From Paramoeba atlantica (Eukaryota > Protista > Discosea): a DNA stretch of 64,000 nt. Of the stretch, positions 1,077-31,907 are shown one piece after another (position 1 is the first letter of the stretch; every line of letters starts with the position of its first letter). Position numbers and translations under genes: made by a program. Where the stretch lies: contig CDRNVI010000002.1 of assembly GCA_977017575.1 (NCBI GenBank), positions 682,001-746,000 of the forward strand, written 5' to 3'. The notes under the pieces are model-generated. The model saw only the letters and a list, made by a program, of their open reading frames with translations. It was not told the DNA's origin and did no database searches.

Positions 1077-1745
1077 AATTTCCCCCATGCACCCCCATCA
1101 ATTTCCCCCATGCACCCCTTCACCCCTGGGGAAATTAAGCCCCCGTTCCGCCGCCCACTTCACCCCCTAGCGCCGCCCCCTTCGCCGTCCCCTCCACCCT
1201 GCTGCGTCGCCCTTCCGGCAACCTGTTTCGCCCCCCCTCTTGGGGAGGGAGCTTGAGCTACCCCATGCGCCGCCGCCGCCGCGCTCCCCGCCGCGCTCCC
1301 ACCGCGCCACCCGCCGCGCTCCCGCCGCGCTCCCGCCGCGCCCCCGCCGCGCCAACCGCCGCGCTCCCGCCGCGCCAACCGCCAAGCTCTCACCACGCCA
1401 CCCGCCCCGCCTCTCGCCCCGCCTCCCCTTCCGCCGCTCCCTTTGCCGCCACAATTTCCGCCCCGTTTTCGCCGCCTTCTTTCGTCCCCGCTTCGCCGGC
1501 CCTTTCTCCGTCCCCCCAGTCGCCGTTCCCCTCCCCGGCCCCTTGTGTGGAGCTACCCGGTGTCAGCAAAACAAGACGCCAAGAAACTAGGGTAGTCTCC
1601 ATATGCAAAAATTTAAATTGTGAAGGGCACTGGTCGAGCTCCATTGTGAGCCCCGCTGGTGAGAGAGCCTCGCAAGCTCCACACACCCTAGCGTGAGTCA
1701 TCCCTGGTGGTGGAACAGAATATAACGACTGTTCCACTACTTCTT

Positions 1746-2183
1746 CAGCTCCGTTTGGAATTCGACCAGTTTTCGTATGACGTTTTGAAAGCGAGCGAAT
1801 TGCGACACGCGAAACAGTCCTGCGGTCACCTGAAGGCGGTTGCATTGGATAGCGAAACAGGTGGCAGTGCGGAGGGCGTTGGCAGGATCAGACAACGCTT
1901 CGAAACGCGCACGAAACGCTGGTGCGTTTATCATTCGTCGAGCGCCGAAACTCCTTTTCAGCTCCGTTTGGAATTCGACCAGTTTTCGTATGACGCTTTG
2001 AAAGCGAGCGAATTGCGACACGCGAAACAGTCCTGCGGTCACCTGAAGGCGGTTGCATTGGATAGCGAAGCAGGTAGCAGTGCGGAGGGCGTTGGCAGGA
2101 TCAGACAACGCTTCGAAACGTGCACGAAACGCTGGTGTGTTTATCATTCGTCGAGCGCCGAAACTCCTTTTCAGCTCCGTTTG
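1746..2183 (+). repeat. 213-bp tandem duplication within unit 1 of the retro-insert
   Basis: CAGCTCCGTTTGGAA recurs at 1746, 1959 and 2172. The whole block is absent from unit 2, with an ACTTCTT microhomology at the junctions. Confidence 0.85.
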
Positions 2184-2589
2184 GAAAAAGAAGGAGAAGA
2201 AGAAGAAGAATTGGAAATGGCTTGCAGACAGCGCGAGCAAGTAACTTCTTTGCCCCAGGATGCGAATCCATCGGGCATTGAAGTCACGGATGACAAGTCA
2301 GACCACGCAACCTGACAGGTATTGCTTGTCTATCTGCGAGTGCGGCATCCCACTTGATTGATGATGATTTTTAGGCAATATATCTCCGAGGAGATGTTAC
2401 CTCCCTAGGACAAGCCCCCCCTTATCGCTTGCTAGGAGCCGTGCCACGCAGCACGCAAGTCAACACCTCTTCGCATTAGCCCTCATGCCGAGACTAGGGA
2501 TCACACATCCAGATCTTCCTTCTCAACTGTTTTGCCCAGGATGTAACATTCTTTTGAAAGACGAATCAATATTGCCACACATAATGGGA

Positions 2590-2602
2590 CTGTACCTTGT
2601 TG
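2590..2602 (+). other. Spliced-leader-like relic CTGTACCTTGTTG preceding unit 2
   Basis: Exact 13-mer shared with 1064-1076, 16 bp upstream of the second GC-rich unit. Confidence 0.6.
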
Positions 2603-3383
2603 ACCGATAATCAAATCAATCAATTTCCCCCATGCACCCCTTCACCCCTGGGGAAATTAAGCCCCCGTTCCGCCGCCCACTTCACCCCCTAGTGCCGCCC
2701 CCTTCGCCGTCCCCTCCACCCTGCTGCGTCGCCCTTCCGGCGACCTGTTTCGCCCCCCCTCTTGGGGAGGGAGCTTGAGCTACCCCATGCGCCGCCGCCG
2801 CCGCGCTCCCCGCCGCGCTCCCACCGCGCTCCCGCCGCGCCACCCGCCGCGCTCCCGCCGCGCCCCCGCCGCGCCAACCGCCGCGCTCCCGCCGCGCCAA
2901 CCGCCAAGCTCTCACCACGCCACCCGCCCCGCCTCTCGCCCCGCCTCCCCTTCCGCCGCTCCCTTTGCCGCCACAATTTCCGCCCCGTTTTCGCCGCCTT
3001 CTTTCGTCCCCGCTTCGCCGGCCCTTTCTCCGTCCCCCCAGTCGCCGTTCCCCTCCCCGGCCCCTTGTGTGGAGCTACCCGGTGTCAGCAAAACAAGACG
3101 CTAAGAAACTAGGGTAGTCTCTATATGCAAAAATTTAAATTGTGAAGGGCACTGGTCGAGCTTTTATTTTTTCATACTTTCCAGTAGAGTAAGTCGGGGG
3201 TATGACCCGCATTCAACGGGATTGCCCCCTTTTTAGAAGACAATGTCAATACGTTTCCTCCTCCGACCATGTCGCCTCATTTCGGCGAGCCCAGAGTATG
3301 TAACTCCCCCTGAGGGCCATCTGTGTCATGCTTTCTCGACACTTTGTGGCCAAAATATGGTCGCCGTTAAAGATGGCATTAAT

Positions 3384-6300
3384 TTATTTGCATGACCCAT
3401 TGGGGAATCCCCGGGCACCTATTTCAAAGGCTATTATGTAGGTGTCCGGGTTTTCCTGTCGCCGTGTATGTAAAAGGATGTTGTACTTCTCGGATTTTCT
3501 CCGATGAGCGTTCTCCGCATTCTCCTCCCATGGGACTGTGAGTTCGATGAGGAACTCTGTCCCATTGTGAAGTTTAATGTAACCGTCGGGACGGAGCAGT
3601 GTATCGTGTTCCCTCAGCCAAGCTGGTGGGTTACGCTCTCCTGGTAGGTCGAAATATGAAAACTCAGTTCCCTGTGCTTCCCTAATATGTTTCGCAAATT
3701 CGGCAAGGACAAGGTTATGACGGAAAGTATATCGTCCTTGCTGAAGTGAAGTGGTGCAGGCGGAAAGGGTGTGTCTGACGGTTTGCACTCGGTCGTTGCA
3801 AATAGGGCATTTCATGTTACTGTAGGTGCTGCGGCCCCATTGAACAAGCGCTGCTCGGGAAGGGAGCGGTGTAAGAGTCATGACGGATGCTACAAAGCGG
3901 GAGATCTTCGCATTCCGGATCCCATTTATGGCAGAAGCGAATTCTTGGGCCATTTCTGGATCCGTAGGAAACTGCCACCATAGGGCTGCGATGGGCGCGC
4001 GTTGCTGCAAGCGCGTGATCATTTCCTCCTCATGTGCTTCACGAAGCCGTTGACGAGTCATTCGGGGATCATCCAGATGTTCTGTAATTAAAGTAGCGGG
4101 TCGTATTTGACCTCTTTGACGTTTGTGTTGCTCTTCCTGTATGCGTATGCGAAGTGTATGTAGGACATTTGGATCTTTGGATTTGTTCATTTGCGTCATA
4201 GATTCTCCCGTGCATTCGTACCAAAGTTTTGACAGGCTCGTAAGGTTCCAGCCTCGGCAAGAGTACAGGACTTCAGAGCTTCCGGCACGCGCCATGTTTA
4301 TCCATTTCCGTATGTGAGACGTGGCTCGCTTCTGAAGGCGTAGCACGGATCCGAACGATAGACAGGGGTGAATAACGAACTGAAAACGGAGACGTGAGAG
4401 AACGGCATTTTTGTACATCCAAAGCTTAGCGGGAAGGCTGTGGGCACTTTGTGTGATGTTCTCCATCCACTGTTTTAGTTTTGAGTCGAGTTTACGAAAC
4501 AGCTCTTTCAGTTGTTGGGACCCCGGTGCCAAGGTCATCCCGAGGAAGGTGCTACCGACATCACATATGTGTGGTATGGTCTCTCCGTAGACTTTTATTT
4601 CCGGACGTCTTGTCATATAGCCTGGATGTTCCTCGCCTTTACGGGTGCTCATGCACTGTATTCGACTCTTGTTCACGTTAATCTTAAGGCCTAGCTCGCC
4701 CAGCACTTTGGTAACTGCATTAAGTGCGTGTTGCATGTCTCCGTCGCTTTCAGTAAGAATAGTTAAGTCATCAGCAAAAGCCTTAAGGAAGTTGTTCAGA
4801 CCGTTTGGGAGTTTCATACCGAAGTGCGGGCAGGAGAATCGGACATATCGCAAAACAATTTCCATCACTATCAGGAAGACAATAGGAGAGAGGGTATCCC
4901 CTTGGAGGACACCTTTTCGTATAGAGATAGGTTGCGTAAGACCTTCGTAGCACTTAATGCGCATGTGCGCATCCGTTAGGGTATTTTTGATGTAGTGGAT
5001 GACCTCCGGCTGTACTTGGGCCCATTTCAGAGCGGCATGTATGATATGATGTGGGACAGACCCGAAGGCATTGCTCAGGTCGAGTTGTGCGAGGCAATAT
5101 TGAGTTTTGTGTTTCTGGTAATGTCGCAGGAGTGAGCAAAGAGTTTGTGTGTGTTCCAGTGTACCGATAATGGAAGGGAGAAAGCCTTTTTGTATTTGAG
5201 GGTCAATGACATGGTGTTCAGTCAGGTGTTGAGTCAGTCGATGTGCGATGATCGTGTGAAAGGTTTTACCTAGAGCACTAGTAAGGGAGATCAGGCGCCA
5301 GTTTTTCGGATTTTCTTTGCTACCTGCTTTATATATCAGCCTGGTTACTGCGGTTTTCCATGATAGCGGGCACACAGAGAAAGTCATTAGATCGTTGAAC
5401 ACAGATGCAAAGTATTCGTGTGTCGATGGGCAGTTTTTGAGTATTTTGTTAGTTATCGTGTCGGTTCCTGGAGAACTGGCGTTGCGCTTCATTGTGACAG
5501 CTGCAGTGACATCCTCACGGGAGATCGGGTTCCATTGCATTGGCTGGCTAGCTGTCGGACCTAGTAGATCTGAAGGAGGGAGACGCGAGGATTGCTCATT
5601 AGGGTTAAAACTTTCTTGAAAGTATGATTCAATGCTAGATCTGTCACAGGTGGGAAATGCGGTGTTTTCTACCTCTCTTCCGTTAGGTTTATCAATCGTT
5701 TCGGATGCCGCGGTCCACGAGTTTCTAGAGAATCTCTGTGCGGCCCATCTTTCATCTAGATCTCTGCGTTGCATTGTAGCTTCCTCCTCCCTCAGCTTGA
5801 TCGCTTTGCGACATTCCTTAATTTGTGCCCGCGTTCTCTCGCGTTCCGCCCGGTTCCTCGTGTAACGTAGCGATCGTTTCATCGTTTCTAAATGGTGTTT
5901 GAGATCGGTTACGGTTCTTTCCGCCGCGAGTGGTCGGTATCTACGTCGTGCATGTCCGGTACTGGTCCTTATCAGGAAACCTTTCGTCGGATTTGCTTCT
6001 ATGGCGACTTCATGTGCTGAGACTGCTAATGCGGCACTGAGTAATTCCGCGTTTCGTACAGCTGCCTCTTTATCCGGTGTAGGGGTAAGTAGTTGAATGC
6101 ATCTCTCTTTCGCTCTCGATTCGACAATCCGCCACTGTACCTCATTTAGTCGTATCGTAACCTTACCTCCGCTTATGGCTTCGTGCTTCTGGAGAAGTTG
6201 CGTTTGCAATCTGGTTCGAGAGTAGGCTTCTTGCTCGGGGGAGGAAGGGTACTCTGCAGCCGGAGGAGGGCTGTTCGGGTGCTGGATGGCTGCTGCATCG

Positions 6301-8228
6301 GTCTCTGAGTCTTCGGTGTCTCTTTGCGTAGTGTTCCTCCGGGCATACACTGGTCCGTATACTTTGCAGCACTTGTGGGCACATTCCACTTTGTTTCGAC
6401 ATGTGTGCTGACACGGGTGCAAACTAAGCTTCGTAGGTGCCCTACTGATAGTTTGGATGCGGTGAGGGGATGCTTCTCGGCGCGGGTTCTTTTCATAGTG
6501 TACGTCTGAGGGATCTTCCTCCCGCTTATGTAGTGTAATATGCAGATGTTGAAGGAGGGGCACATCCCGTCCGGCAAGAACCTTGAGGATTGCGCGGCCG
6601 AGTGCTCCCGCGGAGCTGTATGACTCACCAAGTTTGAAGGTATCATCTTTGTAGAGGGAAGTCCAGCTGGCGTGCCGTCGGTGTTCTTGCGCGTGCGCTT
6701 GTTTTACAACCCTTATGTAGTCACATCCCTGGTGATCCATGAGTTCGTCCAGTGAGGCTGGCTGAACAATTAGGTCGTGGGAGCTTCCGTTCCCCGAAAG
6801 CATTTTACTGAGTGCCGCTTGCGCTGCTTGATGAGAAGCAATTCTGGCCTTGACTAGAGGGGATTCGCTGGCGGCCCGGACGTCTGGAAAATACCGCCAG
6901 GTGAGATCTGTGAGTGTTCTTATTTTTAAGGGGCGCGCCCGGCTTTGGACAAAATGAAGATTTTGTTTGTGTTGAAGCGATGCACTCAGTCCAGTAGGTG
7001 TTGTGGCAGCGTCATCTAGGTTTCCCGAGTGTTGGTTGTTGAACACCCAGGTGGGAACTTCGTCCGTGCTTTCTTCCAGTAGGATGTGATGGTCTACGGA
7101 GACGCTAGGTACCGGTAGTGGGGAAGGGAGGCGAGCGAGCACCTCGGGATACAGAGATTCTGTATTTTGGTTTTCGTATCCAGGGATCTCGTCGTTTTTA
7201 GTGGCACTGCATGAGGTAGCTATCGCGGCGTCGTTTTTGCTGTCGCAGTTTGGTTGCTCGGGAGCGCGATTTTCAAGGTGCAATAGTGGATTCGTACAAT
7301 TGGGTTCATCATTCTCTGCTTGTACATTATGCGCGCTTGGAGCTTTGGGGGTAAGGAAGTCTATGTACCAGAGAAAGATGCGTAGTGGTAATTTTACAAG
7401 TTCCAAAATGATGGTCGATGTTGATGTCTTCTTGGTCTTCCCAAGTAGCAACCAAAGTTCATCGTATTTCCGTGAGACAGGCGTTTTGAAGTTGGAGGGG
7501 GTTAGATAGATCTGGTTGATTGCCACTGGAACTAGAGGTATGCTGCTTCGCAAAAGACTGAGCGCATACCATGTGAGTGCGAATATTAAGTGGACAAGTG
7601 TGCAGAATAGTTCCATGAGGTACTTCACGTTATGAAATAGTATTGCAACCTTGAGGGTCTGCTCCGTGTAGGGGTTGCTCGTTTGATCTGGAGTAGTGTG
7701 TACTAAGTGGCGTTTGCAGCAGGCATGCTTGCATGTGTTTTTGTTTAGACATTTATGTTTACATGGCTTCGTTTGAGGTGGTTCTGTAGAGTTTCGGCAA
7801 TATGCAGGTTGGGTTACGAAGTAGGGTATTTTCATGAATATTGTCGCCAGTAATGCTTCGATGATGCAATATACTCTCCCGAAGAATCTCGGTGGGGTGC
7901 TTATATTCGTCAAGTTCGGTGCTGTAGGAATATCGATTTTGTTTATGCGAGGCTGTTGCCTCTTACAACACGGGTGAAGACATGTTCGTTTGTTGAGGCA
8001 CCTGTGTTTACATGGTGTTCCGTGGGTCATGGGGGTTTGCGGTACCATATTTGCAGTCACTAGTTCGGTTGGCGTGACGCATGATGGTCGTTCGGAGGGG
8101 GCTCCATTCTCGTCGACGGGACGTCCATGGTCTAAGAGATCAACGGTTGACATATCAACGCCGCGTGGTCCTCCTGTAAGGTCCTGCGGCGCATCAGCAT
8201 GAGTGCAATGTGAAGGGGGTCGCGTCAT
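3384..8228 (-). CDS. 1614-aa RT plus restriction-like endonuclease polyprotein, HERO-like
   Basis: RT motifs NWRLISLTS, QKGF, LDLSNAFGSVPH, GVLQGDTLSP, AFADDL. Zinc knuckle CPIC...HTLSAC..SLQQGRYTFRHNLVL and RLE LRPDG...IELTVPWE...RKSEKY. Clade assignment is by motif resemblance only. Confidence 0.9.
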   Translation of the reverse strand: MTRPPSHCTHADAPQDLTGGPRGVDMSTVDLLDHGRPVDENGAPSERPSCVTPTELVTANMVPQTPMTHGTPCKHRCLNKRTCLHPCCKRQQPRINKIDIPTAPNLTNISTPPRFFGRVYCIIEALLATIFMKIPYFVTQPAYCRNSTEPPQTKPCKHKCLNKNTCKHACCKRHLVHTTPDQTSNPYTEQTLKVAILFHNVKYLMELFCTLVHLIFALTWYALSLLRSSIPLVPVAINQIYLTPSNFKTPVSRKYDELWLLLGKTKKTSTSTIILELVKLPLRIFLWYIDFLTPKAPSAHNVQAENDEPNCTNPLLHLENRAPEQPNCDSKNDAAIATSCSATKNDEIPGYENQNTESLYPEVLARLPSPLPVPSVSVDHHILLEESTDEVPTWVFNNQHSGNLDDAATTPTGLSASLQHKQNLHFVQSRARPLKIRTLTDLTWRYFPDVRAASESPLVKARIASHQAAQAALSKMLSGNGSSHDLIVQPASLDELMDHQGCDYIRVVKQAHAQEHRRHASWTSLYKDDTFKLGESYSSAGALGRAILKVLAGRDVPLLQHLHITLHKREEDPSDVHYEKNPRREASPHRIQTISRAPTKLSLHPCQHTCRNKVECAHKCCKVYGPVYARRNTTQRDTEDSETDAAAIQHPNSPPPAAEYPSSPEQEAYSRTRLQTQLLQKHEAISGGKVTIRLNEVQWRIVESRAKERCIQLLTPTPDKEAAVRNAELLSAALAVSAHEVAIEANPTKGFLIRTSTGHARRRYRPLAAERTVTDLKHHLETMKRSLRYTRNRAERERTRAQIKECRKAIKLREEEATMQRRDLDERWAAQRFSRNSWTAASETIDKPNGREVENTAFPTCDRSSIESYFQESFNPNEQSSRLPPSDLLGPTASQPMQWNPISREDVTAAVTMKRNASSPGTDTITNKILKNCPSTHEYFASVFNDLMTFSVCPLSWKTAVTRLIYKAGSKENPKNWRLISLTSALGKTFHTIIAHRLTQHLTEHHVIDPQIQKGFLPSIIGTLEHTQTLCSLLRHYQKHKTQYCLAQLDLSNAFGSVPHHIIHAALKWAQVQPEVIHYIKNTLTDAHMRIKCYEGLTQPISIRKGVLQGDTLSPIVFLIVMEIVLRYVRFSCPHFGMKLPNGLNNFLKAFADDLTILTESDGDMQHALNAVTKVLGELGLKINVNKSRIQCMSTRKGEEHPGYMTRRPEIKVYGETIPHICDVGSTFLGMTLAPGSQQLKELFRKLDSKLKQWMENITQSAHSLPAKLWMYKNAVLSRLRFQFVIHPCLSFGSVLRLQKRATSHIRKWINMARAGSSEVLYSCRGWNLTSLSKLWYECTGESMTQMNKSKDPNVLHTLRIRIQEEQHKRQRGQIRPATLITEHLDDPRMTRQRLREAHEEEMITRLQQRAPIAALWWQFPTDPEMAQEFASAINGIRNAKISRFVASVMTLTPLPSRAALVQWGRSTYSNMKCPICNDRVQTVRHTLSACTTSLQQGRYTFRHNLVLAEFAKHIREAQGTEFSYFDLPGERNPPAWLREHDTLLRPDGYIKLHNGTEFLIELTVPWEENAENAHRRKSEKYNILLHTRRQENPDTYIIAFEIGARGFPNGSCK

Positions 8229-8256
8229 GGTAACGATAAAGATAAGAGAAAAAAAA

Positions 8257-8284
8257 CAACAAGGTACAACAAGGTACAGAAACT
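8257..8284 (-). other. Longest SL-like relic AGTTTCTGTACCTTGTTG plus a second TACCTTGTTG
   Basis: The minus strand reads AGTTTCTGTACCTTGTTG-TACCTTGTTG, then a 28-nt pyrimidine-rich leader, then the ATG of the retroelement ORF. Confidence 0.7.
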
Positions 8285-8710
8285 TTTGTGAGCCCCGCTG
8301 GTGCTTATTGTAGAGCTAGTTGAAGGAGCTAGTTGGAGCTTTGTGGAGCTTATTGTGAGCCCCGCTGGTGAGAGAGCCTCGCAAGCTCCACACACCCTAG
8401 CGTGAGTCATCCTGGTGGTGGAACAGAATATAACGACTGTTCCACTACTTCTTTGCCCCAGGATACGAATCCATCGGGCATTGAAGTCACGGATGACAAG
8501 TCAGACCACGCAACCTGACAGGTATTGCTTGTCTATCTGCGAGTGCGGCATCCCACTGGGAAAGTCTGCGCGCGACTGACAGCGTACCACCCACGGAGTA
8601 CGGTAATACCCGGTGCCGTTTCACACGAGCACTAAATAACTAGGGTGTACTCTAAACCCATAGCCAGTCATGGCCAAACGGGTTAAACAACAACAACAAC
8701 AACAACAACA

Positions 8711-10031
8711 TAGCGATAATACGTGCCCGCTTCAACCGTCGCATTATCTCATCGGGGAGAAATCCGTTGATAAGGTCCGTGAACATATGGCATAGTTGCA
8801 AGCTGCAGACTGGGTCGTCGATTAGTATGCGGATTAGAGAGTCCGTAGTGCCCGTTGGACCTGGACTAGCTCCTTTGACTAGCCTGTGCCCTGCCGCCTT
8901 GAGCTCCATCGGTTCTAACCCAACAAGGACCGGCGCATCGCTGGGAAGAGTGAATTCGTACTTGTTTTGTGGATGCAAATCCTCCAGTTTCGAGAGCGTC
9001 TCCTCTTCTGAGAGCTGATACGGCGTAAATGCTTGGTCCATAACTTGAGCTGCTTTCCTGGTATTACCTTCCAAGACCAATTTTGTGGCTCTCTTGATTG
9101 CCCTTTTGTCTGTTACTTGACGACCCTTGGAAACCTCGGCTTGTGTAGTCTTATCTTCGTTCCCTTCTGGGAAAGGACGACGACGCCTCTTCCGTTTCGA
9201 ACTTTCTATAAAAGATGCCAAGGAACACTACATGGCTGACAATACGCTGTGCCAGATCTCATGTCGCTGTGAATATGAACTATGTGCATATTCGCTCATG
9301 AGTTCGCGATAGGTCGCTACTACTCCGGGTATCATTTCTGGACTGATTATGCGAGAAGTGGGAATGGGAGAGTGGTCCAGATCATCTGGGGCCCAGTTCT
9401 CGACGGTAGAGGCTGCTGGAAGGATACGCTTCGTCTGTTCCGTCCTTTCGATTCGCTCTTCTGTTACCGTTGTGTCGGGAAGATGCCATACAATTTTATA
9501 GATGCTAACCGTTTCGACTGGTGGAAGTGTGCCGAAGAAGTCTTCTTCTGGCTTATGGCCGACGATGCCTGTGTATTGGATGTTCAATCTGCCATTCCCT
9601 CGCCTCTTGTAAACCCCGGTTACTTTTCCTAGAGATACATTGATTTTATTGTTATCAAAAGCCCAGGCAACCGTGCAGACAGATCCTTTCTTTATGTGTT
9701 TGGATTTATTCCACAGTTCGCAAGCCGGAATCGGATGCTGATTCTGAGGCAGGATGTTCCCAAGCATCTGTTCGCACATCTCATGGGGATCTGCGAGTGC
9801 ACCATAAGAAATATCCCATTTGTTTGTTTCGGTGCTTGAAGACGTCTGTGTGTTATCGATACATTGGATTACTGGCGTATCGTCCTTAGTTTGCAGGTGA
9901 TCTGGGGCTGATGGAGGTTCGCGGTCGTCCGAATCACCTTCTTTAGAGAAAGCATTGGGGTCTTCGGGGGTTATACTTGTTATAAAAAGGGGTCGGCATC
10001 TACGCTGTAAATAATTACAGTTTCGACACAC
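8711..10031 (-). pseudogene. Proximal part of CRE/SLACS-like RT ORF (N-terminal region through RT domain 0/1)
   Basis: ORFs 9228-10031 and 8652-9221 are in one frame, separated by a single TAG at 9228-9230. Contains RATKLVLEGNTRKAAQV, LEDLHPQ and GASPGPTG. Confidence 0.75.
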
Positions 10032-10300
10032 GTGTCGCTAAACGATATCCCCTCGAGGGAGAAAGCCCTCGTCAACCTCCCGTGAGCTCATTAAAATAAT
10101 GAGCTAGAAAGTCAGTTGTTTGACTTTCCACCAGGGGAGGTAACTCGCTAGGGTACGCGGAGCTTGCGAAGCTCGCTCACCAGCGGCCTTCAAAGAAGAC
10201 AACCAATGCCCTTCACGCCCTTTGTGAGAAGGGAGTTTTTGCCCGACGACGACCAAAATTGGCATCATGGCAGACGGCAAAAACTTGTCACTTTCCATCC

Positions 10301-10610
10301 TCTTGTCCTAGTTATTTAGTACATCGTTTACGTGTACCAGACAAGACTCAGGTCATTCCCCAAGGGGCAGGGGCTTCCTTTCGATAGAGAGGAAGGATCT
10401 TTATGTCAATAGCGCGAATGACTCCTGCCCTAGTTTTGTAGTACCTTGTTATATTCGGTACCGGGCGGTGTCATTCTCATTCTGCATTGTCAGAGTGACA
10501 GTTCCCCTAGTTATTTGGTGCCTCGTTATGTTGGCACCGGGTATTGTCACCCACAGGATCATGCTCACCCTAGTTTTTTAGCGTCTTGTTGTACTGACGC
10601 CGGGTGAGTT
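10301..10610. repeat. Array of four covarying two-stem hairpin motifs
   Basis: Copies at 10307-10340, 10428-10465, 10505-10541 and 10568-10604. Inner stems differ in sequence but all pair: gtaca/tgtac, gtacc/ggtac, gtgcc/ggcac, gcgtc/gacgc. Confidence 0.8.
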
Positions 10611-10670
10611 AGCTCGGGAAGCTGGGATCGCTAAGTCCCATCATCCGGCCTGAGCCGAATGCCCTGACTA

Positions 10671-11951
10671 CTACTCTTCGGGGGTTGGTTCTTTGATTTC
10701 CGATATCTCCACATCGGTTTTGTGAATTGATGGAGATCCCGGAGAGAGAAGCTGATCACGGCTATGGTTTTGCTTCCCGTCAATGGGAGAGAAAAACTCA
10801 AGCGTTGGTGGGGAGAAAGAGATTTCTTTTGCATCATAAACCGGTGTTTCAGGCGTAGCAAACCCGTCGGGCGTTGATAGGGATAAGATGTCTGACGTGT
10901 TGGGAGTTGAGTCTTCTATCTCGGGCGTGTCGGAAAAAGGATCGAAACTGTGGACATCATGAACGTATCCGTTGCCCACCCATCTGTACCCTTTAAATCT
11001 GGGGTCCTTTGGGTCAGGACGATCGGGCTCTTGAACTCCAGGACTTGAGAATTCAGGAAGTGCAGTCTCATGACGAGATTCAGTGGGAGGCAGGTTGCGT
11101 TCCATTATCGTTGTCTGTTTGCTTTCGGAAGTTTTATCTCTGATGGGGGTTTTATTGTCGTCCGACTTGCCAACCGATAGAGCTTCCGTTATGTTATGCT
11201 CCGCGTCTAGTTTTGGCTTTGGCTCTTCCGGGATTGGTTCTACGCTTGTTATTCCACTTGGCACTCCGTGGTGTCAGAAGGCCCTTCCAAACTGTTTTTC
11301 CAACTGCTCCTGCAACCTTTCCAAGTGTCGACAGCCGGGAAGTGTAATTGAGTTCGCTGTCCTTTCCCTGAATGCCGTTTCCCATCATTAAGGCCGTGGT
11401 GTGTTTTTCTCTGGCACCTTCGTCATCTCCTCGTCGTGTTCGGGACTGATTCTCCTCTCTGATATTTAGGATACTTTTCTTGAAGGAAATATTTTCAGAT
11501 GTTCGAATCACATCTCCCTGTGTGGGAGTTTTTTCTAGTGTAGACGTTTTCGCTTTGCGGAGGATTATCTTTAAATTGGAGCGTTGCGGCGTGCTGGCTT
11601 CAGCCGCCTTTCTATCCGATTCTTTCCGTTCCGCTTCTTTTCTTTCCGCTTCTTCCTGTTCAGCTTTTTTTCGGTCAGCTTCTTCTTGTTCCATTTGTTT
11701 CTTAAACTCGTAAAAAGAGATTCGTCGATATGAGCGTTTTTGTTCTTTTCGTCCTGATCCTGATAGTTTCTTATCCGTTTCTTTTGAAGGAAGATTTGCT
11801 GGGCTGGAGATTTGCCGGAATGGAGGAACTGAGGTTGGCGAAAGAGAAAACACATTGGTTGGCGAAAGAGAAAGCACATTGGTTGGCGAAAGAGGAGGCG
11901 GCGAAAGAGGAGGCGGCAGGTCCGAAGGTCGAACAGTCTTTTTTTAACCAC
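10671..11951 (-). pseudogene. Low-complexity, frameshifted ORF1-like region upstream of the CRE-like RT
   Basis: Overlapping minus-strand ORFs (11571-11951, 11194-11877, 10671-11264) are charged and Pro-rich, with 30-bp repeats at about 11830-11920. They lie between an SL-like relic and the RT ORF. Confidence 0.4.
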
Positions 11952-12045
11952 TCCGATGAATTACTTTCGTAAACTTTCACGCCTCTCGCCAACGATATCC
12001 GCAGTCCGAGCGGACTATTTTGAAAAATTATACAACTCGGATAGA

Positions 12046-12058
12046 CAACAAGGTACAG
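12046..12058 (-). other. Spliced-leader-like relic CTGTACCTTGTTG at the presumed 5' end of the CRE-like element
   Basis: The plus strand has CAACAAGGTACAG. It is oriented like the downstream minus-strand ORFs and is not followed by GT. Confidence 0.55.
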
Positions 12059-12334
12059 GAGACGTGGGGCTTCGGGAGACGTGGGGCATTCGGAATGAAT
12101 CAGGGCTAACACCCAGTTCGCCGAATAGCGAGGGCTTAGCTCTCCACGTGCCCGGGGAAGGAAGTCCTAGGATCTGCGGAGGCAGCAAATCGCTCACCGA
12201 TTTGCATACCCTATTCGAAACTCGCAAGAGTTTCGATGATCCAGCGACCAGGCTCCTTCCCCCAAGTTCCCCTGCTTTCTCAGGGGAGGCGACATCCTTG
12301 TACTAGGGTAACCGCCTGTAATCACTATCACTAT

Positions 12335-12530
12335 CACCCGCCGCGACACCAGCCGCGCTCCCCGCCTGCGCTCGCCGCCTGCGCACCCCGCCACGCTCCC
12401 CGCCGCGCTCCCCGCCACGCTCCCCGCCTGCTCTCCCCGCCTGCACTCCCCGCCTGCGCTCCCCGCCACGCTCTCCGCCGCGTCACCCGCCGCGACACCG
12501 GCCGCACTCCCCGCCACGCTCCCCGCCGTC
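12335..12530 (+). repeat. GC-rich degenerate minisatellite (CGCTCCCCGCC-like)
   Basis: Same motif class as 1270-1400 and 2790-2900. Confidence 0.65.
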
Positions 12531-20454: not shown

Positions 20455-21167
20455 CTGTGCCCCCCCCCACTTATTTGTTACCACTTTTTCGAAAAAAGGA
20501 CAATTAAGTGGGGGGTTCAATTTATTTGGTTAGATGAAACAAAGGTCCCAAGATTTTTTCTTTATTTTAGGAATCTCCAAAGCGTTCGGATAAAGTTGGC
20601 TTTACAGAAACGGTATCTTTTATTTATATTTATCGTATGAGTAGTTTTTCTACCTATCCCGTACTAGTATAGTAGTAGCAGTTTCTTTTGTCAAACGGCT
20701 ATAAGGTATGGGGTTTGATAGAGCACCGACTAGTGGGGCAGGAGGGCATATTGTAACCCAAGCATCAAGGCGACGTGGGCGAGACGACTGGGATGGTGGT
20801 GGGGAATGACTGTTCGCAGTGAGAGAAGAACGGAGTGGTGGTGGTGGGGAATGACGGTTCGCAGGGATGGGAGAAGGGAGGGGTGGTGGGGGTGAATAAC
20901 TATTATCCGTACACTGGAAGGAACCAAAAAAAAGTTAGAAACGTAGCTCGGTATACCGTAGTGATATGAAAAACTTGAAGTAGACAGCATATAAATACAA
21001 ACTGACGTCGGATCCTGATATACTGTATGTATGAGGTTCGTAGGGAAAGAATTGAGCCCCCCCCCCAAAAAAAAATCCGGCGCCGCTTCGCGGCGCCTCC
21101 TGCACCGTCTCGTCAAAAAGGACAATTAAGTGGGGAGGGGACTACGACAAATAAGTGGGGAGCACAG
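20455..21167. mobile_element. TA-flanked MITE
   Basis: TIR CTGTGC(C/T)CCCC..ACTTATTTGT at both ends. TA at 20453-20454 and 21168-21169. The subterminal AAAAAGGACAATTAAGTGGGG is repeated. Confidence 0.75.
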
Positions 21168-21183
21168 TATCTGTCGCACCCCT

Positions 21184-21245
21184 CCCCCCTAGTTGTCTGT
21201 CACCTTTTCTTGAAAAGTAGCGACAGATAACTAGGGGGGGTGCAG
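21184..21245. repeat. Palindromic end of a related MITE family (GACAGATAACTAGGGGGG), also at 58164-58268 and 60967-61020
   Basis: Inverted arms at 21184-21201 and 21222-21239, ending ...GTGCAG|TA. The same motif recurs near 58.2 kb and 61.0 kb. Confidence 0.65.
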
Positions 21246-22339
21246 TATAAAATTAACTAGCGGGGGTGTACCTTGGTTCCGTATCCCAGCTTTTTCGACT
21301 CACGCTAAAACCGTGACGCCGGAAAAATCACTTAAGCAAGCCCCTTAAGTGGGAAGCACCCTGAGCTGTAGATAGGTGAGGGAGATACGGAGTATCTAAC
21401 TCACTTACTAAGGTTAATTCAAAAAATTGAAAATGCCCTTCAAAGAAGCGAAAGATCGAGAATTTTCAAAATTCCGAAACGTAGCAGTAGGTCATTAGAT
21501 GAACTCTTTAATACTGGAAAAATCATCTAAAACAACCTTATTTCTCAAATTTTAGAACACTTTTGGTAAAAAAAAAGTGCGTGTGCAAAGGTCTGCGATA
21601 CGACAAACTGGTTGACTAAGAAGAGTCCTTTGAGTACAGTAAAAGTCACTATTCTGAGAGTCACTAAAAATGAGAATCGGGCTGTCAACGTTCAATTGGT
21701 AAAAATGAGAATGCAATGGTAAAATGAGAATGGGGCTTTAACTTCTGATGTCAACGTTCAACTCGAATATAATCCGAAAAATGAGAATACAAAAAAAAAC
21801 TTTTTTGAAGTGATATACAAGTATAGTATACACAATATAAGTCTTCTTCTTCCTCTTCTTGTATCGCCCTTTAAATAATGCTCACTCCAAACCACGGCCC
21901 CTCCCACGGTCCCCACGTCAAAGTCTTCGACGGATCGGGAGCAGGAGCAAGCATAGAGACGCCGTCCGATCTCCCAGGCTAACATATCCCCTTTTTCCTA
22001 TGCCACGCCCTTGGTATAGCCCAGTGCTTTGCAGGAGCCTGGACCCCGTTCGCGTCGGAGGGCGGAACGGCTTGCTGGAGCTTCACGCCCACGGAGGGAC
22101 TGATAGCTGACTCGGGGTGGTCGGCCGAGTTAGTCCGGTGTAACCTCCGTAGAGGGTGCATCGAAGCCAACCCGGGACCACGCCGTGCAAAACGGAAGAA
22201 TAAAACGCCCAAATCCTCCGGCCCCGCGGACAGTAACCCCGTGAACGTAACGGGACAGACGAGCACACAAACCGAGGACACCCCTACCCCACTACCCGAC
22301 CCCCACATTACAGACCCCATTCCCACACCCCCGCATCAG

Positions 22340-23620
22340 GGGGGGGCCAAGCGGGATGCCAGCGAGGATTGCGCCGAGGCTGGCAGCCTCAGAGCGGGCC
22401 CGTATCCAAAATCCCATTGTAATGGGGGGCCCAACCCGACACCCCACAGCTTTTCATCGGGCCCTAAGTCCACAACCCCTGTTCTGGGGGGGGGCCATGC
22501 CGGATGCCAGCGAGGATTGCGCCGAGGCTGGCAGCCTCAGAGCGGGCCCGTATCCAAAATCCCATTGTAATGGGGGGCCCACCCCGACACCCAACAGCTT
22601 TTCATCGGGCCCTAAGTCCACAACCCTTGTTCTGGGGGGGGCCATGCCGGATGCCAGCGAGGATTGCGCCGAGGCTGGCAGCCTCAGAACGGGCCCGTAT
22701 CCAAAATCCCATTGTAATGGGGGGCCCACCCCGACACCCAACAGCTTTTCATCGGGCCCTAAGTCCACAACCCCTGTTCTGGGGGGGGGCCATGCCGGAT
22801 GCCAGCGAGGATTGCGCCGAGGCTGGCAGCCTCAGAGCGGGCCCGTATCCAAAATCCCATTGTAATGGGGGGCCCAACCCGACACCCCACAGCTTTTCAT
22901 CGGACCCTAAGTCCACAACCCCTGTTCTGGGGGGGGGCCATGCCGGATGCCAGCGAGGATTGCGCCGAGGCTGGCAGCCTCAGAGCGGGCCCGTATCCAA
23001 AATCCCATTGTAATGGGGGGCCCACCCCGACACCCAACAGCTTTTCATCGGGCCCTAAGTCCACAACCCTTGTTCTGGGGGGGGCCATGCCGGATGCCAG
23101 CGAGGATTGCGCCGAGGCTGGCAGCCTCAGAACGGGCCCGTATCCAAAATCCCATTGTAATGGGGGGCCCACCCCGACACCCAACAGCTTTTCATCGGGC
23201 CCTAAGTCCACAACCCCTGTTCTGGGGGGGGCCATGCCGGGTGCCAGCGAGGATTGCGCCGAGGCTGGCAGCCTCAGAGCGGGCCCGTATCCAAAATCCC
23301 ATTGTAATGGGGGGCCCACCCCGACACCCAACAGCTTTTCATCGGGCCCTAAGTCCACAACCCTTGTTCTGGGGGGGGCCATGCCGGATGCCAGCGAGGA
23401 TTGCGCCGAGGCTGGCAGCCTCAGAGCGGGCCCGTATCCAAAATCCCATTGTAATTGGGGGCCCATCCCGACACCCCACAGCTTTTCATCGGGCCCTAAG
23501 TCCACAACCCCTGTTCTGGGGGGGGCCATGCCGGACGCCAGCGAGGATCGCGCCGAGGCTGGCAGCTGCAGAGCTGGCCCGTATCCAGAATCCCATTGTA
23601 ATGGGGGGCCAACCCCGCAC
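22340..23620 (+). repeat. Nine tandem copies of a 147/148-bp unit in the 5' part of CRE-like element 1
   Basis: GCCAGCGAGGAT starts at 22358, 22506, 22653, 22801, 22949, 23096, 23243, 23390 and 23537. Length differences come from a G homopolymer. Confidence 0.95.
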
Positions 23621-26359
23621 TCTCACGGGACCCTGATCGAGCACATCGCGGCGGCCGCCAATGTGCCCAAAACTTCTCAGCGGACGACGGGACAGGGGGG
23701 GACATCGGAGGTGGGGGGAGTGTCTTCCACCACACGAAACAAGCAATCCACCCCGACAACCCAGGGCGCTCCAGTTGAGGTGCGTGGACAAGCCCCTTCC
23801 CCCGAAAATTTAGCAGAGCTCCTGGGGAGGGGGTCCTTACGTAAACTGTACGCACTCCAATACCCGGCTTGGAAGGAATACACTGCCGGTGTATGCCACG
23901 ATTTTATTAATAAGTCGGTGGAGGGCAAGGTCGAGATAGCCTGGAACCTCCTCCTCGCCGTTAAACGTTTCCTTTTCCTCCCCGAGGACAAGCTGTCGCA
24001 ACGCCAGCTAGCGCGCGAACTTAGAATGCGCGCCCATTTAGAGGGTTCGGAGACCTTGGCTCCATCCCCGAGTCAGGCCAACGGCCCCCCGTGGTCTGTC
24101 AAAAAACGGGTCGAGGAATTGTGCAGGGCGGGTTGCTTCTCCAGGGCGGCCAAAACGATGGAGGCGCCCCTCAATCCTCCGGCCAACCCCACGGCGGCCC
24201 TAGAACAGGCAAAACGTCTACACCCCACAGGCGGGCCCTACACTGCGGGGAAATTCAGGTACAACAGGGACCGACACGGAACCCTACCCTCCCCCGCCGA
24301 TGTGGCCAGGAAGGCTCAAATCCTGGCCCCTATCCGCGCCCCCGGACCTACGGGATGGACCAAGGAACTGCTTGTCCCAGTCCTCATGGAAGATGGACCC
24401 CGCGAGTGTATCACGTGGATAATCCACGGGATAATGACCAACTCCCTCCCCCCCTCAATGAGGGAACTTCTCACGGGGGCGTCCTTAAAACTATTCACCA
24501 AACCGGACTCCCCGGCGGGGCACCACTCTTCCTACAGGCCCATCGCCATGGGAGAGTGCATCCTCAAGGTGGCGGGGCTCCTTGCCCTGGAGAAAATCCG
24601 GGAACATCTCCCCACTTACTTTCAGGGCATCCAGTTTGGAGCCCAATACACGCAGGGGTGTGAGCACATAATTTATAATGTGCGACAGCACTTCAGGGAC
24701 AGGCCGAAGGAGGTCATCGTGGCGGCAGACCTCGAGAACGCCTTTAATAGCATCTCACGGTCGGCAATTTTTAGGGCGGTAAGGGGGGATCCGAAACTCC
24801 TCCCCATTGAGGGCATCACCCTGTTCAGCTACGGCACCACCAGTACCCTTCACCTTGGGGAAGGCCAATGCATCACGAGCTCAAGGGGGGTCAAGCAGGG
24901 CGACCCCATGGCTCCCATCCTATTTGCCATAGGGATCCAGGGGGCAATCGCCAGAGTGGCGGCCAACTTCACAGGCACGCTGAAGGTCTGGGCGTACCTG
25001 GATGACGTCACCTTTGCTGGTGAACCCAAGGTTTGCGCGGAAGCCCTAGAGGCCCTCCGCGAGGAGCTGAAGCATCTTGGGCTACGGTTAAATACTGCTA
25101 AATGCAAAGTAGCTACCAGAGGCGAGGACCTCTTCTCCGAGTTCTCCGGATCTCGCATGGTCCACTCCCCCGGGGGGGTCAAACTACTGGGGGCCTTCAT
25201 CGGGGTGTCGGAGGCTAGGGAGGAAGAATGGGTGCTTTCCAAGGCCCCCAAGGTAATCTCCTTCCTGGGGAAACTCAAGGACATTAGCAGGCAATGCTCT
25301 TTGCCCCTTTTAAGACTCTGTGGGAGTCCTCGATGGAACTACATCGTAAGGACCCACGACCCCCCGGTCACTAAAGTGGCCAATACCCAGGTCGACAAAG
25401 CCGTCCTGGCATGTGCTGAGGCCTTGCTCGGGGGGATGGGCTCCTTGGGAAAAACGCCGTTCTCCAATAACCTTTTCACGGCAGATTTCCTGGGGACCAT
25501 CCCCTTCGCGCACAAGGCGGAAGACATGCAGGCCAAGGCGAAGAACGCCCTACAGGGCCGACCCCAAGGCATGTCAGCCAAGGAACAGCGGCGCAACCTC
25601 TGTGAGGCCGCGTTGGGGAAAGCCCCGACGGCCACCCAACTGGTCTGCATGCGACAGACCCAGAACATTCACTCCACTAAGTGGATGAACGCATGGCCCA
25701 ACAGGCCGGAGTATTACATGCGGGACCCGCAGTGGGAGACTGCGGCCCGTCTCCGGTACTTGGTCGCCCCCACCTCGGAACCTGAGCTCCAGTGCGTGTG
25801 CGGTGCAACCCTCCGCAATGAGGAGTTTTGCGTACACGCACTGGATTGCAAAAAGGTTAAGGGGAAGACCCAGGCCTCCCGCCACAAGGAGGTCAAGGAA
25901 ACCTTTCGAAACCTTCTTGTGCAGTATGGTTTCAAACCGGACCTACACGAACCGAGGTTCGACAATGGACGGGGGCCCGACATATGCTTCCAGCTGGGAC
26001 GGAAGACTGCCCTAGTTGATGTCACCGTGGTGAACCCACTGGCCCCGTCCTACGTGGAGAAGGAGGCCGCAGAGCCCTCTCATACCCTGAGGATGGCAGA
26101 GGCCAACAAGCGGCGCTCACACGATGAGATGGCGACCGCCCGAGGGATGGAATTTTACCCCTTGGCATTCACCACGTATGGGATCCCGGGCCCAGAAACT
26201 TTGAACTTCCTAACCAAGGTGGCCCGGGCTCACTCATCCGACAAGAACGGATGCATGTCCCACCTTCTGATGGCCATAGGGGTGGCCATCCAGAAAGGTA
26301 ATGCCCAGATTGTACAGGCGGCAGTACAGGACTGGTACCGCCGCGGGGTACGAGGCTAG
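22799..26359 (+). CDS. CRE/SLACS/CZAR-like RT-RLE polyprotein (element 1); true start uncertain because of repeat frameshifts
   Basis: YRPIAMGE, GIQFG, DLENAFNSI, GVKQGDPMAP, YLDDV. C-terminal CVCG...HALDC...RHKEV, GPDI...VDVTVVNP and FYPLAFTTYG. Confidence 0.9.
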   Translation: MPARIAPRLAASERARIQNPIVMGGPTRHPTAFHRTLSPQPLFWGGAMPDASEDCAEAGSLRAGPYPKSHCNGGPTPTPNSFSSGPKSTTLVLGGAMPDASEDCAEAGSLRTGPYPKSHCNGGPTPTPNSFSSGPKSTTPVLGGAMPGASEDCAEAGSLRAGPYPKSHCNGGPTPTPNSFSSGPKSTTLVLGGAMPDASEDCAEAGSLRAGPYPKSHCNWGPIPTPHSFSSGPKSTTPVLGGAMPDASEDRAEAGSCRAGPYPESHCNGGPTPHSHGTLIEHIAAAANVPKTSQRTTGQGGTSEVGGVSSTTRNKQSTPTTQGAPVEVRGQAPSPENLAELLGRGSLRKLYALQYPAWKEYTAGVCHDFINKSVEGKVEIAWNLLLAVKRFLFLPEDKLSQRQLARELRMRAHLEGSETLAPSPSQANGPPWSVKKRVEELCRAGCFSRAAKTMEAPLNPPANPTAALEQAKRLHPTGGPYTAGKFRYNRDRHGTLPSPADVARKAQILAPIRAPGPTGWTKELLVPVLMEDGPRECITWIIHGIMTNSLPPSMRELLTGASLKLFTKPDSPAGHHSSYRPIAMGECILKVAGLLALEKIREHLPTYFQGIQFGAQYTQGCEHIIYNVRQHFRDRPKEVIVAADLENAFNSISRSAIFRAVRGDPKLLPIEGITLFSYGTTSTLHLGEGQCITSSRGVKQGDPMAPILFAIGIQGAIARVAANFTGTLKVWAYLDDVTFAGEPKVCAEALEALREELKHLGLRLNTAKCKVATRGEDLFSEFSGSRMVHSPGGVKLLGAFIGVSEAREEEWVLSKAPKVISFLGKLKDISRQCSLPLLRLCGSPRWNYIVRTHDPPVTKVANTQVDKAVLACAEALLGGMGSLGKTPFSNNLFTADFLGTIPFAHKAEDMQAKAKNALQGRPQGMSAKEQRRNLCEAALGKAPTATQLVCMRQTQNIHSTKWMNAWPNRPEYYMRDPQWETAARLRYLVAPTSEPELQCVCGATLRNEEFCVHALDCKKVKGKTQASRHKEVKETFRNLLVQYGFKPDLHEPRFDNGRGPDICFQLGRKTALVDVTVVNPLAPSYVEKEAAEPSHTLRMAEANKRRSHDEMATARGMEFYPLAFTTYGIPGPETLNFLTKVARAHSSDKNGCMSHLLMAIGVAIQKGNAQIVQAAVQDWYRRGVRG

Positions 26360-26625
26360 CTGGGCGGAATGGGGAGGGGCGTTTCCGGTGCAAGAATTGT
26401 AACAAGCACTACGAATTAAACAAACAAGATTCTCACGCCAAAAAATGCCCGTTCCGCAGCTCCTCAATGCCAGCCCAACCGCTACATCCATCGAATAGCG
26501 ATACGCTATCCCAGAAGACTACACCGGTCCGCAGCACACCGCCAACAGGCATTACAACATCCCCATAGACAGTAATCATTTCGGGAGATCCATCTCTTAA
26601 TGCGAATGAACAGTCGCATTCGACG

Positions 26626-29559: not shown

Positions 29560-29681
29560 GAACTACGTGATTCTCGCCCCCCCCCCCATTCACCAGCCTG
29601 AACCCGTCGGGTGTTGGTCGAGTCGGCAGGACCTATACTCACACCTAGCCCCCGTCGGCTAGGTACCCCAAGTGAGGTAGT

Positions 29682-30043
29682 GCCCGGGGAGGGGACCCTG
29701 CCCCTCCTCGTCGGCCACCACCTGGTTCTGTGACTGTTCCGCTGCCGGCGGAGGCCCATTGCTTGCGCCCTCTCGTACAACAAGAGCAGGGTTACCAAGG
29801 CAAGCTGGGAGAGGCCGAAAGACCCGGTCCAGAACACGTAAGGAAGGTTTTCCCTGGGCCGACTCCTAGCAAAAGCGCAGGGAGTCCTCAACCTCCCCAA
29901 TGAGTTTGGAAGTCGAGTGAGGAAAGCGAAGGGAAGTAAAGGAAAGGAACGAAAAGGAAAAGCAAAGGGAGGTAAAGAAAGGGAGGTAAAGGAAGTGAAA
30001 GGAAAGAAAGAAGTCGTGAAAAAAAAAAAAAAAAAAAAAAAAA
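29682..30043 (+). mobile_element. Poly(A)-tailed short retro-copy, or tandem SINE-like unit, in the 3' region of element 2
   Basis: A25 at 30019-30043, bounded by (A)CCCCAAGTGAGGTAGT at 29665-29681 and 30043-30059. The sequence after each 17-mer is a diverged homologue of the other. Confidence 0.6.
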
Positions 30044-31907
30044 CCCCAAGTGAGGTAGTACACGGGTAGTGAATCTCCTCCCCGTCGGCCAGCATCCTGT
30101 TTCGCGACCGTGTCGCTGTCGACACAGGCCCGCGCCTGCGCCCTCCCACATAACAAGGGAAGGGTTCACAAGTCAGGCCGTGGAGAGGTCGAAAGACCCG
30201 GTCCGGAACGCGCGAATGGATTGGGTCTGGATTGCTTGTTTTTATTTTTACTGTGTCTTGTTTGTCGTATATACTTAGGGGAGATTGAATTGCTAGTTTT
30301 GGGCTGAGAAAAAAGAAAAAGAAAATATACTTCTGTGGAAATAAAAAGAATTGCTAATTTGATTGCTTGTTTTAAATTCATATACCCCCCTAATGGACCT
30401 ACTATGTACTTGGTTCGTCTACTGGGTCAAAATATAGAGGCAATGCCGCGTTTCATACTTCTCCCCCCTTATTAATCGAAAAAAAAAAAAAAAAAAAATT
30501 CGTATTCGCTCTATTACAGCAATCTCTTCTTCACTTGGTTCGCCTTCTTCTTCTTTAGTGTCGGTCTCAAAGGAAAATTCTTCCACGGCATCATCGGATT
30601 CAATATTTATGTTGTCGACATTTACTTCAGGTTCTTGAGGAGAGATGTCAGGATCCATATTAGAACCATTTTTTTTGTCCAAACCATGTGCCTTGCAAAT
30701 CTAATCCTCTCGAAAATAAATTTATATTTCTTTTTTCAAACATGAGAATTTATGATTGACCCATCAAAAGAAGCTCTGTCAACGTTCAACACCCAATTCT
30801 GAGAATAGTGACCAATAAAGATCATTTTCCGTGTCAACGTTCAACACCCTATTCTCAGAATAGTGACTTTCACTGTAGTCCAGTTGGTAAAGGGGTTCTA
30901 TTTTGACGCTGGACGGCCGCGGTTCGGTTCCCGACACCGACATTTTACTAATAAAAATGAAAAAAAAATTGCTCAAGTTCGCAAAAAAAAACAATTTCGG
31001 AACGATTTTTTTTTATTTTTTTTCTCGAAAAAGTGGCCAGCTGGTCACCAAAAACACGGTTTGCTTTTTGTAAACCGTTACCCCCCCTTACTTCGCCTCC
31101 CCCCTTACTTTACCACATTTAGTCACTGGACGTGTGGTGAAGTAAGGGGGGTGTCAGATTTTTCTCCAGACAACTTACCACCTCTTTACACAGCCGGAGG
31201 GCTGCACTGCAACCGACTGTTGCATCGGGGTAAGGCGAGGCAGGGCCACGCCCAGTGGTCTTCAAAGGGGGGGACATAGATGGCGCACAAAGATCGATGC
31301 ACAAAGGTTCTTTGTGCAACTTTCTTGGTGAAGACGACGCCGTCATACCGGGATTTTAAACCACAGTCCGGTTTAACGTTCCGGGGGGAATGTTAACGGC
31401 TACAGGAATGCTACGTAGCTGCAGGAATGATAATTTTTGAAGATTGTCTTGGGTTCGTCGACGCAACGGGTTGGTAGCAGCACGTTGTTGCTGCCTTGTA
31501 CTAACGAAAACAGGTAGAGGACTTCGGCCTCGAAAGTTTCAAATCTATCTGTGAAGGGTCTGGCCTGCCAGTGACCAATCGGAGCAATCCGGAATGACTT
31601 AGATTCGTTGAACCATTTCTAATTCAGAACGGTTTTCTTCCACGTCAGTTTCATCATCGCTTTGATCATAAAGTCGCTCCACAGCGTCTTGTAGTTCTAA
31701 AATTTAAATTGGTGTTTAATAAGTTATGTTCTGCGACATTTTTTATATTTTACGATGTAAGAAATTTTCATGGGGGGAAAGTTAAAAACGTATGGGACAT
31801 CGTAGACAAACTAAAAGAAGCATAAAATATAGAATGTGCAACACGAGGTATTACAACACTCAAGAAAAAGAAATTATGCTCAATGTCGATAGCATCATAC
31901 CTTTTTT

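Follow-up and report, generated by a model that had tools for sequence, protein, structure and literature searches.

A repeated, covarying hairpin cassette in putative retroposons of a protist genome

Nested retroelements fill the first 12 kb of the window analysed here, a 64-kb stretch of DNA (C2:682001-746000 within a 45.7-Mb assembly), and a first-pass annotation had noticed among them a short two-stem motif whose stems appeared to change in sequence whilst remaining paired. The question which this locus raises is whether that motif, termed the cassette here, is a genuine RNA structure and, if so, what it might do for the elements that carry it. Long intron-free open reading frames (ORFs) and a spliced leader of the kinetoplastid type (3' end ...AGATACAGTTTCTGTACYTTGTTG; ...CAGTTTCTGTACYTTGTTG|GT) mark the host as what is probably a free-living kinetoplastid-type protist, and all of the cassette copies considered below come from this single genome.

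The cassette is a bulged hairpin of approximately 55-65 nt. A variable outer stem closes with three invariant C-G pairs (CCC/GGG); within it lie an inner stem of 6 bp (G-Y-R-Y-C plus a closing G-U), an apical loop of 10-11 nt, the 3' part of which reads A-N-A-A-C-R-A, and a 3' bulge of 9 nt, AAAWAACUA. The same two-stem fold was predicted independently by RNAalifold, together with an extra pair that is G-U in 34 and G-C in 6 of 44 copies, and it is this pair which brings the inner stem to 6 bp and leaves the unpaired stretch as a pure 9-nt bulge on the 3' side. When 67 distinct sequences were compared, pairing stood at 97.3% in the CCC/GGG helix and 97.9% in the inner helix, as opposed to 29-40% for slid partners, and the observed covariation was reached by none of 500 column shuffles; the earlier proposal that the stems swap sequence and still pair is thus borne out. 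There are at least nine complementary inner stems (GUACC/GGUAC, GCGUC/GACGC, GUGCC/GGCAC, GUGUU/AACAC, GCAUC/GAUGC, GCGCU/AGCGC, GCACC/GGUGC, GCGCC/GGCGC and GUGUC/GACGC, the last being that of the plus-strand copy at 1544-1604, with one G-U pair), and the changes that separate them are transitions only. The outer stems are wholly different between paralogues with their pairing kept, and in one type, that of the cassette M3 described below, they extend to as many as 14 bp. The unpaired positions are near-invariant while the stems vary, and a single-stranded heptad, ANAACNA, is displayed twice in each cassette, once in the loop and once in the bulge, each time directly before the G that opens a descending helix strand. 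The cassette is a real structure under selection.

It had been stated in the first-pass annotation that G-U wobbles do not settle which strand folds. However, in the two core helices G-U combinations outnumber A-C by 25 to 8, and the 386-nt region holding four cassettes folds with a z-score of -5.1 on the element strand compared with -3.4 on the other, which together favour the element sense strand as the one that folds. These figures bear on the suggestion that the cassette acts instead at the level of DNA, as a hairpin, a cruciform or a protein site in DNA or cDNA, or that it is a neutral structure hitchhiking by amplification. The antisense strand does fold well in its own right, as the z-score of -3.4 indicates, the conserved CCGG and CTAG are palindromes, and most copies are products of recent amplification. 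Against it stand the excess of G-U pairs on the sense strand and the retention of pairing across paralogues with mostly different stems and invariant heptads, the latter being a pattern that neutral drift would not be expected to give, and we grant this explanation a slight chance at most.

The copy number of the cassette was established in two ways. A strict pattern, CCGG-N15-35-AACTAGG, matches the window six times against an expectation of 0.78, a number reached by none of 100 shuffles, and a stricter pattern has 43 matches genome-wide with none for its reversed control. A covariance model, R1, was built on the 44 distinct aligned copies, taken from the window and from genome loci; searched against the window with filters off it gave seven matches at E <= 1e-4, the next best having E = 0.48, and in the genome it gave at least 150 matches, all with E < 1e-15. 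The seven window matches are exactly the seven copies that had been picked out as complete from the sequence by eye (Table 1), and the cassettes are also highly repeated in DNA contigs matching the stretch. On the minus strand four copies, M1 to M4, follow one another within a unit of approximately 700 bp, and the minimum-free-energy fold of this region recovers M1, M2 and M3.

Table 1. Cassettes, carrier elements and a related-looking hairpin, in positions of the window
Feature	Positions	Strand	Remarks
Cassette	1544-1604	+	R1 68.4 bits, E 1.2e-18; within the composite unit, in its first 'unit A' monomer (C-rich)
Cassette	3066-3126	+	R1 68.4 bits; in 'unit A' monomer number two, which repeats 1097-1396 at 96% (repeat family D2)
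Cassette, diverged	8597-8657	+	R1 42.9 bits, E 8.7e-11; loop GUUUCACACGA; about 40 nt 5' of the (CAA)n tail that ends the composite unit
Cassette M1	10556-10616	-	R1 69.5 bits; inner stem GCGUC/GACGC, outer stem CUCACCC/GGGUGAG
Cassette M2	10493-10553	-	R1 70.9 bits; inner stem GUGCC/GGCAC, distal stem GUGACA/UGUCAC
Cassette M3	10416-10477	-	R1 74.7 bits; inner stem GUACC/GGUAC, long outer stem GAAUGACACCGCCC/GGGCAGGAGUCAUUC
Cassette M4, degenerate	10298-10348	-	R1 23.3 bits, E 9.5e-05; CUGGUACA...UGUACUAAAUAACUAGGAC
SINE-like unit (short interspersed nuclear element) with M1-M4, about 700 bp	9973-10668	-	Limits set by a second copy at 95% identity
Composite unit, putatively retroposed, with three plus-strand cassettes	1063-8712	+	Starts with spliced-leader relic TTCTGTACCTTGTTG; (CAA)n tail; 13-bp target-site duplication (TSD)
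Long interspersed nuclear element (LINE) encoding reverse transcriptase (RT), nested in the composite unit	3160-8290	-	ORF 3384-8228; RVT_1 E 2.1e-30
Hairpin with 13-bp stem, loop AAUAUAACGA	1706-1741	+	Identical copy at 8414-8449; repeat families D6/D7; no R1 match

Six simpler hairpins with similar loops (1707-1740, 8415-8448, 10107-10128, 26385-26411, 29768-29791 and 30141-30164) had been grouped with the cassette, a grouping which did not survive, as none of the six matches R1 and the best score among them is that of 30133-30171, with E = 1.9. Hairpins whose loop ends in AACRA are in excess in the window (29, compared with 16.4 +/- 4.0 in shuffles), and this arises because the cassettes themselves and repeated copies are counted. 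The one hairpin that does look related is at 1706-1741: with a loop, AAUAUAACGA, close to the loop GAAUAUAACAA of M3, it is possibly a relative of the apical hairpin of the cassette; in its minus-strand homologue at 10107-10128 the loop is not conserved.

What sort of element, then, carries the cassette? The first 50 nt or so of the minus-strand unit with M1-M4 (10668-10617) form a structured head, GUCAGGGCAUUCG..., and the first 260 nt, comprised of this head and three cassettes, recur at more than 200 candidate loci at approximately 83% identity. These loci have a precise 5' end, extra nucleotides at the junction, TSDs, and (TCA)n or (CAA)n tails, from which they are judged to be SINE-like retroposons. 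The head folds into three small hairpins in which compensatory changes separate the subfamilies (CGGC/GCCG vs CGAC/GUCG and GGGA/UCCC vs GGGG/CCCC; loci L049-L072), and conservation is higher in the cassettes than in the intervening linkers. In a third family, of about 770 bp, a single cassette of the M3 type stands 3' of a C-rich tract and the element ends with a hairpin and an (ACATA)n or (AAACA)n tail; its copies show TSDs and 5' truncation. Depending on the family, an element thus holds between one and four cassettes, situated in its 5' or middle part. Two other identities were considered and discarded. Inverted pairs of single cassettes 9-13 kb apart had suggested the terminal inverted repeat of a DIRS/LTR (long terminal repeat) element, yet the carrier proves to be a retroposon of some 770 bp that has a tail and a TSD of its own and undergoes 5' truncation. 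A hairpin followed by CTAG is also seen at the 3' end of a Helitron; microsatellite tails and TSDs speak against that identity, as does the pairing of the outer stems across the CTAG.

A number of smaller observations belong with these families. Some truncated copies (L003, L016 and L035:6960-7050) end within the bulge of their first cassette (...CTAAATAACTAGGGTAAATAACTAGTA..., ...GCTACATACC|ATAAAAG...), which hints that breakage or template switching may take place there. A spliced-leader relic at 12048-12062 (plus-strand sequence CAACAAGGTACAG) stands at the head of a minus-strand element, which lies upstream of the 700-bp SINE-like unit, and an array of C-rich 12-bp repeats at 12337-12528 is similar to the C-rich tracts found before single cassettes. 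An origin of AACTAGGG in the spliced leader was considered and dropped, the end of the leader of this genome, given above, being unrelated to the cassette.

The position of the cassette within these families is informative as to its role. It had been suggested that the motif is a signal for RT loading or 3' recognition, and that it lies about 40 nt before the CAA tail. The distance is correct for one copy, that beginning at 8609 in the first-pass annotation (8597-8657 here), but not for those beginning at 1556 and 3078, which lie in internal monomers, nor for the four on the minus strand, which lie in the 5' half of their unit; moreover, in L065, a related SINE with a (CAA)n tail, a different segment stands at the place of the 8597-8657 cassette. 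In the families tailed by (TCA)n and (ACATA)n, 250-500 nt or more separate the cassette from the tail, and the hairpin abutting the tail is a different one; indeed, each family has its own terminal hairpin directly 5' of its tail. The proposed 3' role is difficult to reconcile with this arrangement, and it is the position of the terminal hairpin, rather than that of the cassette, at which a handle for the RT would be expected. As the microsatellite tails differ, so presumably do the LINE partners, and a module common to families with different tails and terminal hairpins of their own resembles a shared core domain of SINEs more than it does a 3' priming signal.

The same observations have to be set against the view that the cassette came from the 3' untranslated region of an autonomous LINE, where it would bind the RT or ORF1 protein of that element, and that the SINEs copied this signal and placed it further upstream than is usual. 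The copy close to the (CAA)n tail is in keeping with this, and LINEs are reported to contribute the middle bodies of SINEs (PMC5786205). The cassette is also reminiscent of the 3' stem-loops of stringent LINE/SINE pairs: it is a covarying hairpin whose loop nucleotides are conserved, and its carriers have short-repeat tails, (CAA)n and (TCA)n among them. However, those stem-loops adjoin the tail and are common to the partner LINE, whereas most cassettes are in the 5' half of elements with three types of tail, and no LINE copy was seen in the loci examined.

The motif had also been described as shared by autonomous and non-autonomous elements. This found no support, on three counts. Neither RT gene of the window contains or adjoins an R1 match, the two being the LINE nested in the composite unit, which has a spliced-leader relic as its head (8267-8286) and no match inside, and a second one, element 1 (RT ORF 22799-26359). 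Alignment with element 1 copies of 99% identity breaks off at 26373/4, which places the hairpin at 26385-26411, one of the six simpler ones, outside the element. Finally, in 264 kb of genome loci no RT frame is followed by a cassette in the same orientation, other than where the RT gene has been interrupted by a SINE; the RT frames found near cassettes are explained by such insertions or by adjacent, unrelated elements. Taking the two sides together, a derivation from a LINE is considered unlikely. The N-terminal part of the element 1 ORF lies in a tandem array of 147-bp repeats (22339-23617, 8.7 copies, 96% identity) which gives in-frame repeats of 49 residues.

Conserved unpaired nucleotides held within covarying stems might equally be those of a small self-cleaving ribozyme or of some other RNA-processing signal, the more so since ribozymes are known in retroelements, an example being the HDV-like (hepatitis delta virus-like) ribozyme Pr77/L1TcRz of trypanosomatid retroposons (PMC8190864). 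The structure, however, is a plain bulged hairpin with neither a junction nor complementarity for a pseudoknot, and the retention of the head and of every cassette, three or four in number, by full-length retroposed copies would indicate that their template RNAs had not been cut there. The first-pass annotation, whilst listing a ribozyme among its options, had noted no resemblance to the hammerhead, HDV, twister or pistol consensus; the latter statement holds, as nothing in the whole 64 kb reaches the gathering score of any Rfam family, ribozymes included, and none of the hammerhead, HDV-like, twister, twister-sister, pistol, hatchet or hairpin ribozyme families matches 9900-10750 or 10400-10620 even at E <= 10. 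With full-length copies keeping their head and cassettes, the ribozyme option itself is highly improbable. An HDV-like fold for the SINE head was likewise tried and set aside, there being no match to the HDV models of Rfam and an ambiguous result when the head was threaded by eye, and the weak Rfam matches to mir-140, MarS, Pospi_RY and CRISPR-DR10 are at chance level. The description of the cassette as an uncatalogued, conserved and covarying cis-acting RNA structure of retroelements is upheld by the absence of Rfam matches at the gathering score together with its strong pairing and covariation.

One further match below threshold deserves mention, as it would make the cassette a ligand-binding aptamer related to the preQ1-I riboswitch (RF00522). 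Both combine a short stem with an A-rich tail, 3' of it, that has CUAGG at its end; in the cassette a stem of 5-6 bp is followed by UAAAAAACUAGG, which aligns to the tail consensus AUAAAAAACUAAGG. The score, however, reaches 14.5 bits where the gathering threshold is 39, E is 1.3-5, and only one of the seven copies is listed. The loops (AGUACAACAA, GAAUAUAACAA, AACAUAACGA and AGCAAAACAA) have no UAG or CUAG with which to form the loop-tail pseudoknot P2, the GGG of the tail pairs with the CCC 5' of the stem and so gives a nested topology, and the context is one of retroposons as opposed to queuosine genes. The chance that this relationship is real is close to nil.

The head and cassettes together could have been taken from a gene for a host small RNA, in the manner of the tRNA, 7SL and 5S heads of other SINEs, in which case the cassette would serve the ribonucleoprotein (RNP) or the promoter of that gene. 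The 5' part, about 280 nt in length, is highly structured and its 5' end is precise; in the main families T-runs resembling terminators of RNA polymerase III come after it, 3' of the third cassette. Against this, neither the head nor the cassettes correspond to an Rfam family, ARAGORN predicts no tRNA anywhere in the window, and no 'master gene' in single copy came to light; lone cassettes are also met in other settings, such as 3' of C-rich tracts. Such an origin is judged quite improbable.

The reading that we favour, and for which we hold the case to be about evenly balanced, is that a sequence-specific RNA-binding protein docks on the cassette, which would be a multivalent site on the RNA of SINE-like, LINE-dependent retroposons and not a handle for priming target-primed reverse transcription. 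Two heptads displayed on a scaffold that is independent of stem sequence, and repeated up to four times, would suit the docking of a protein, encoded either by the host or by a LINE, that the non-coding retroposon RNA would need; docking might serve RNP assembly, stability or access to the retrotransposition machinery. A parallel in architecture is offered by the polyadenylation-inhibition element of U1A, in which a pair of internal-loop heptads along one helix is bound by two U1A molecules. The likeness is confined to one helical scaffold with two single-stranded heptads, the sequences being unrelated, but it suggests that a two-heptad scaffold could accommodate paired or dimeric protein binding. 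However, docking should be considered with caution, and several points weigh against it. No run on record as RNA matches the stretch, DNA contigs alone doing so; the covariation comes largely from a few paralogue types which have been amplified many times, so that independent events are modest in number; and degenerate patterns for the cassette gave no matches in the metagenome (two scans), prokaryote-genome and viral collections, in which bodonid DNA is probably scarce and records of this genome may be absent.

Among known systems the closest in kind is arguably the central conserved domain of SINE superfamilies (the CORE-, V-, Deu-, Ceph- and Meta-SINEs and the HCD-SINEs of bivalves), a conserved module which appears to be under selection and whose function is unexplained (PMC4824008, PMC11481361). 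Such domains are, as is the cassette, internal modules between the 5' end and a LINE-type tail and are common to families with different tails. The cassette differs in that it is short, is present one to four times per element, has an explicit covarying structure, is so far known from a single protist genome and is without a tRNA-type head, and the comparison is one of kind and not of sequence. Within the kinetoplastids the closest parallel would seem to be the Pr77 or 79-nt hallmark of the ingi/L1Tc clade (L1Tc, NARTc, RIME and SIDER), which is likewise a retroposon signature common to many non-autonomous elements; SIDER2 has two 79-nt signatures in tandem near its 5' end, and RNA structure matters for its function (PMC5509151). 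Position and fold nevertheless set the two apart. Pr77 occupies positions +1 to +77 and acts as a promoter and an HDV-like ribozyme (PMC8190864), whilst the first cassette begins only after some 50-60 nt of the element; the cassette is repeated, and is a simple bulged hairpin in a region with no HDV-type Rfam match.

A more ambitious possibility is that the cassette is a new functional fold, perhaps a small ligand- or metal-dependent aptamer or a ribozyme with the A-rich bulge and ANAAC loop as its tertiary core, or else the defining domain of a kinetoplastid SINE superfamily which recruits one host factor on behalf of several unrelated LINE partners. We consider this distinctly unlikely, but were the superfamily interpretation true, a 'central domain' of SINEs would become experimentally tractable in a protist. 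A short, repeated and covarying module with two identical heptads offers an unusually clean handle on the function of such domains, and the cassette would be the first structured SINE core to be described in kinetoplastids; we found no paper in the literature describing SINEs or a motif of this kind in bodonids. Kinetoplastid genes are transcribed polycistronically and their transcripts are trans-spliced, and the cassette bears on how the RNA of a non-coding retroposon is made, stabilised and passed to a LINE enzyme in such a setting. For annotation, the covariance model already marks hundreds of retroposon copies in this genome.

There remain the composite unit and several repeats elsewhere in the window. 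The composite unit, of 7.6 kb, is flanked by the 13-bp TSD ATAGCGATAATAC at 1050-1062 and 8713-8725, begins with a 15-nt spliced-leader relic (1063-1077) and ends with its (CAA)n tail at 8688-8712, features which imply that it may have arisen by retroposition of a trans-spliced chimeric RNA; it interrupts a minus-strand coding sequence. Within it are a 213-bp tandem duplication (1736-2186, 2.1 copies, 97% identity) and, at about 2354-2600, the 3' end of a (TCA)n-tailed SINE in reverse orientation. Elsewhere in the genome there are more than 200 dispersed copies in which the 3' part of the spliced leader is followed by GTACATTTT and a hairpin (loci L031-L034, e.g., G000:C2:38803); these appear to correspond to spliced-leader RNA including its intron side, and suggest a family derived from that RNA. 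A long, near-perfect palindrome at 21175-21245, CCCCCCTAGTTGTCTGTCAC...GCGACAGATAACTAGGGGGG, has ATAACTAGGG in common with the cassette and does not match R1 (E 5.7). Finally, the interval 29560-30220 holds two related units of about 190 nt (CCCCAAGTGAGGTAGT...GGAGAGGYCGAAAGACCCGGTCC), separated by a purine-rich microsatellite and an A-run, that belong to an unclassified repeat family, and a unit of the same kind is found reversed beside a retroposon in locus L020.

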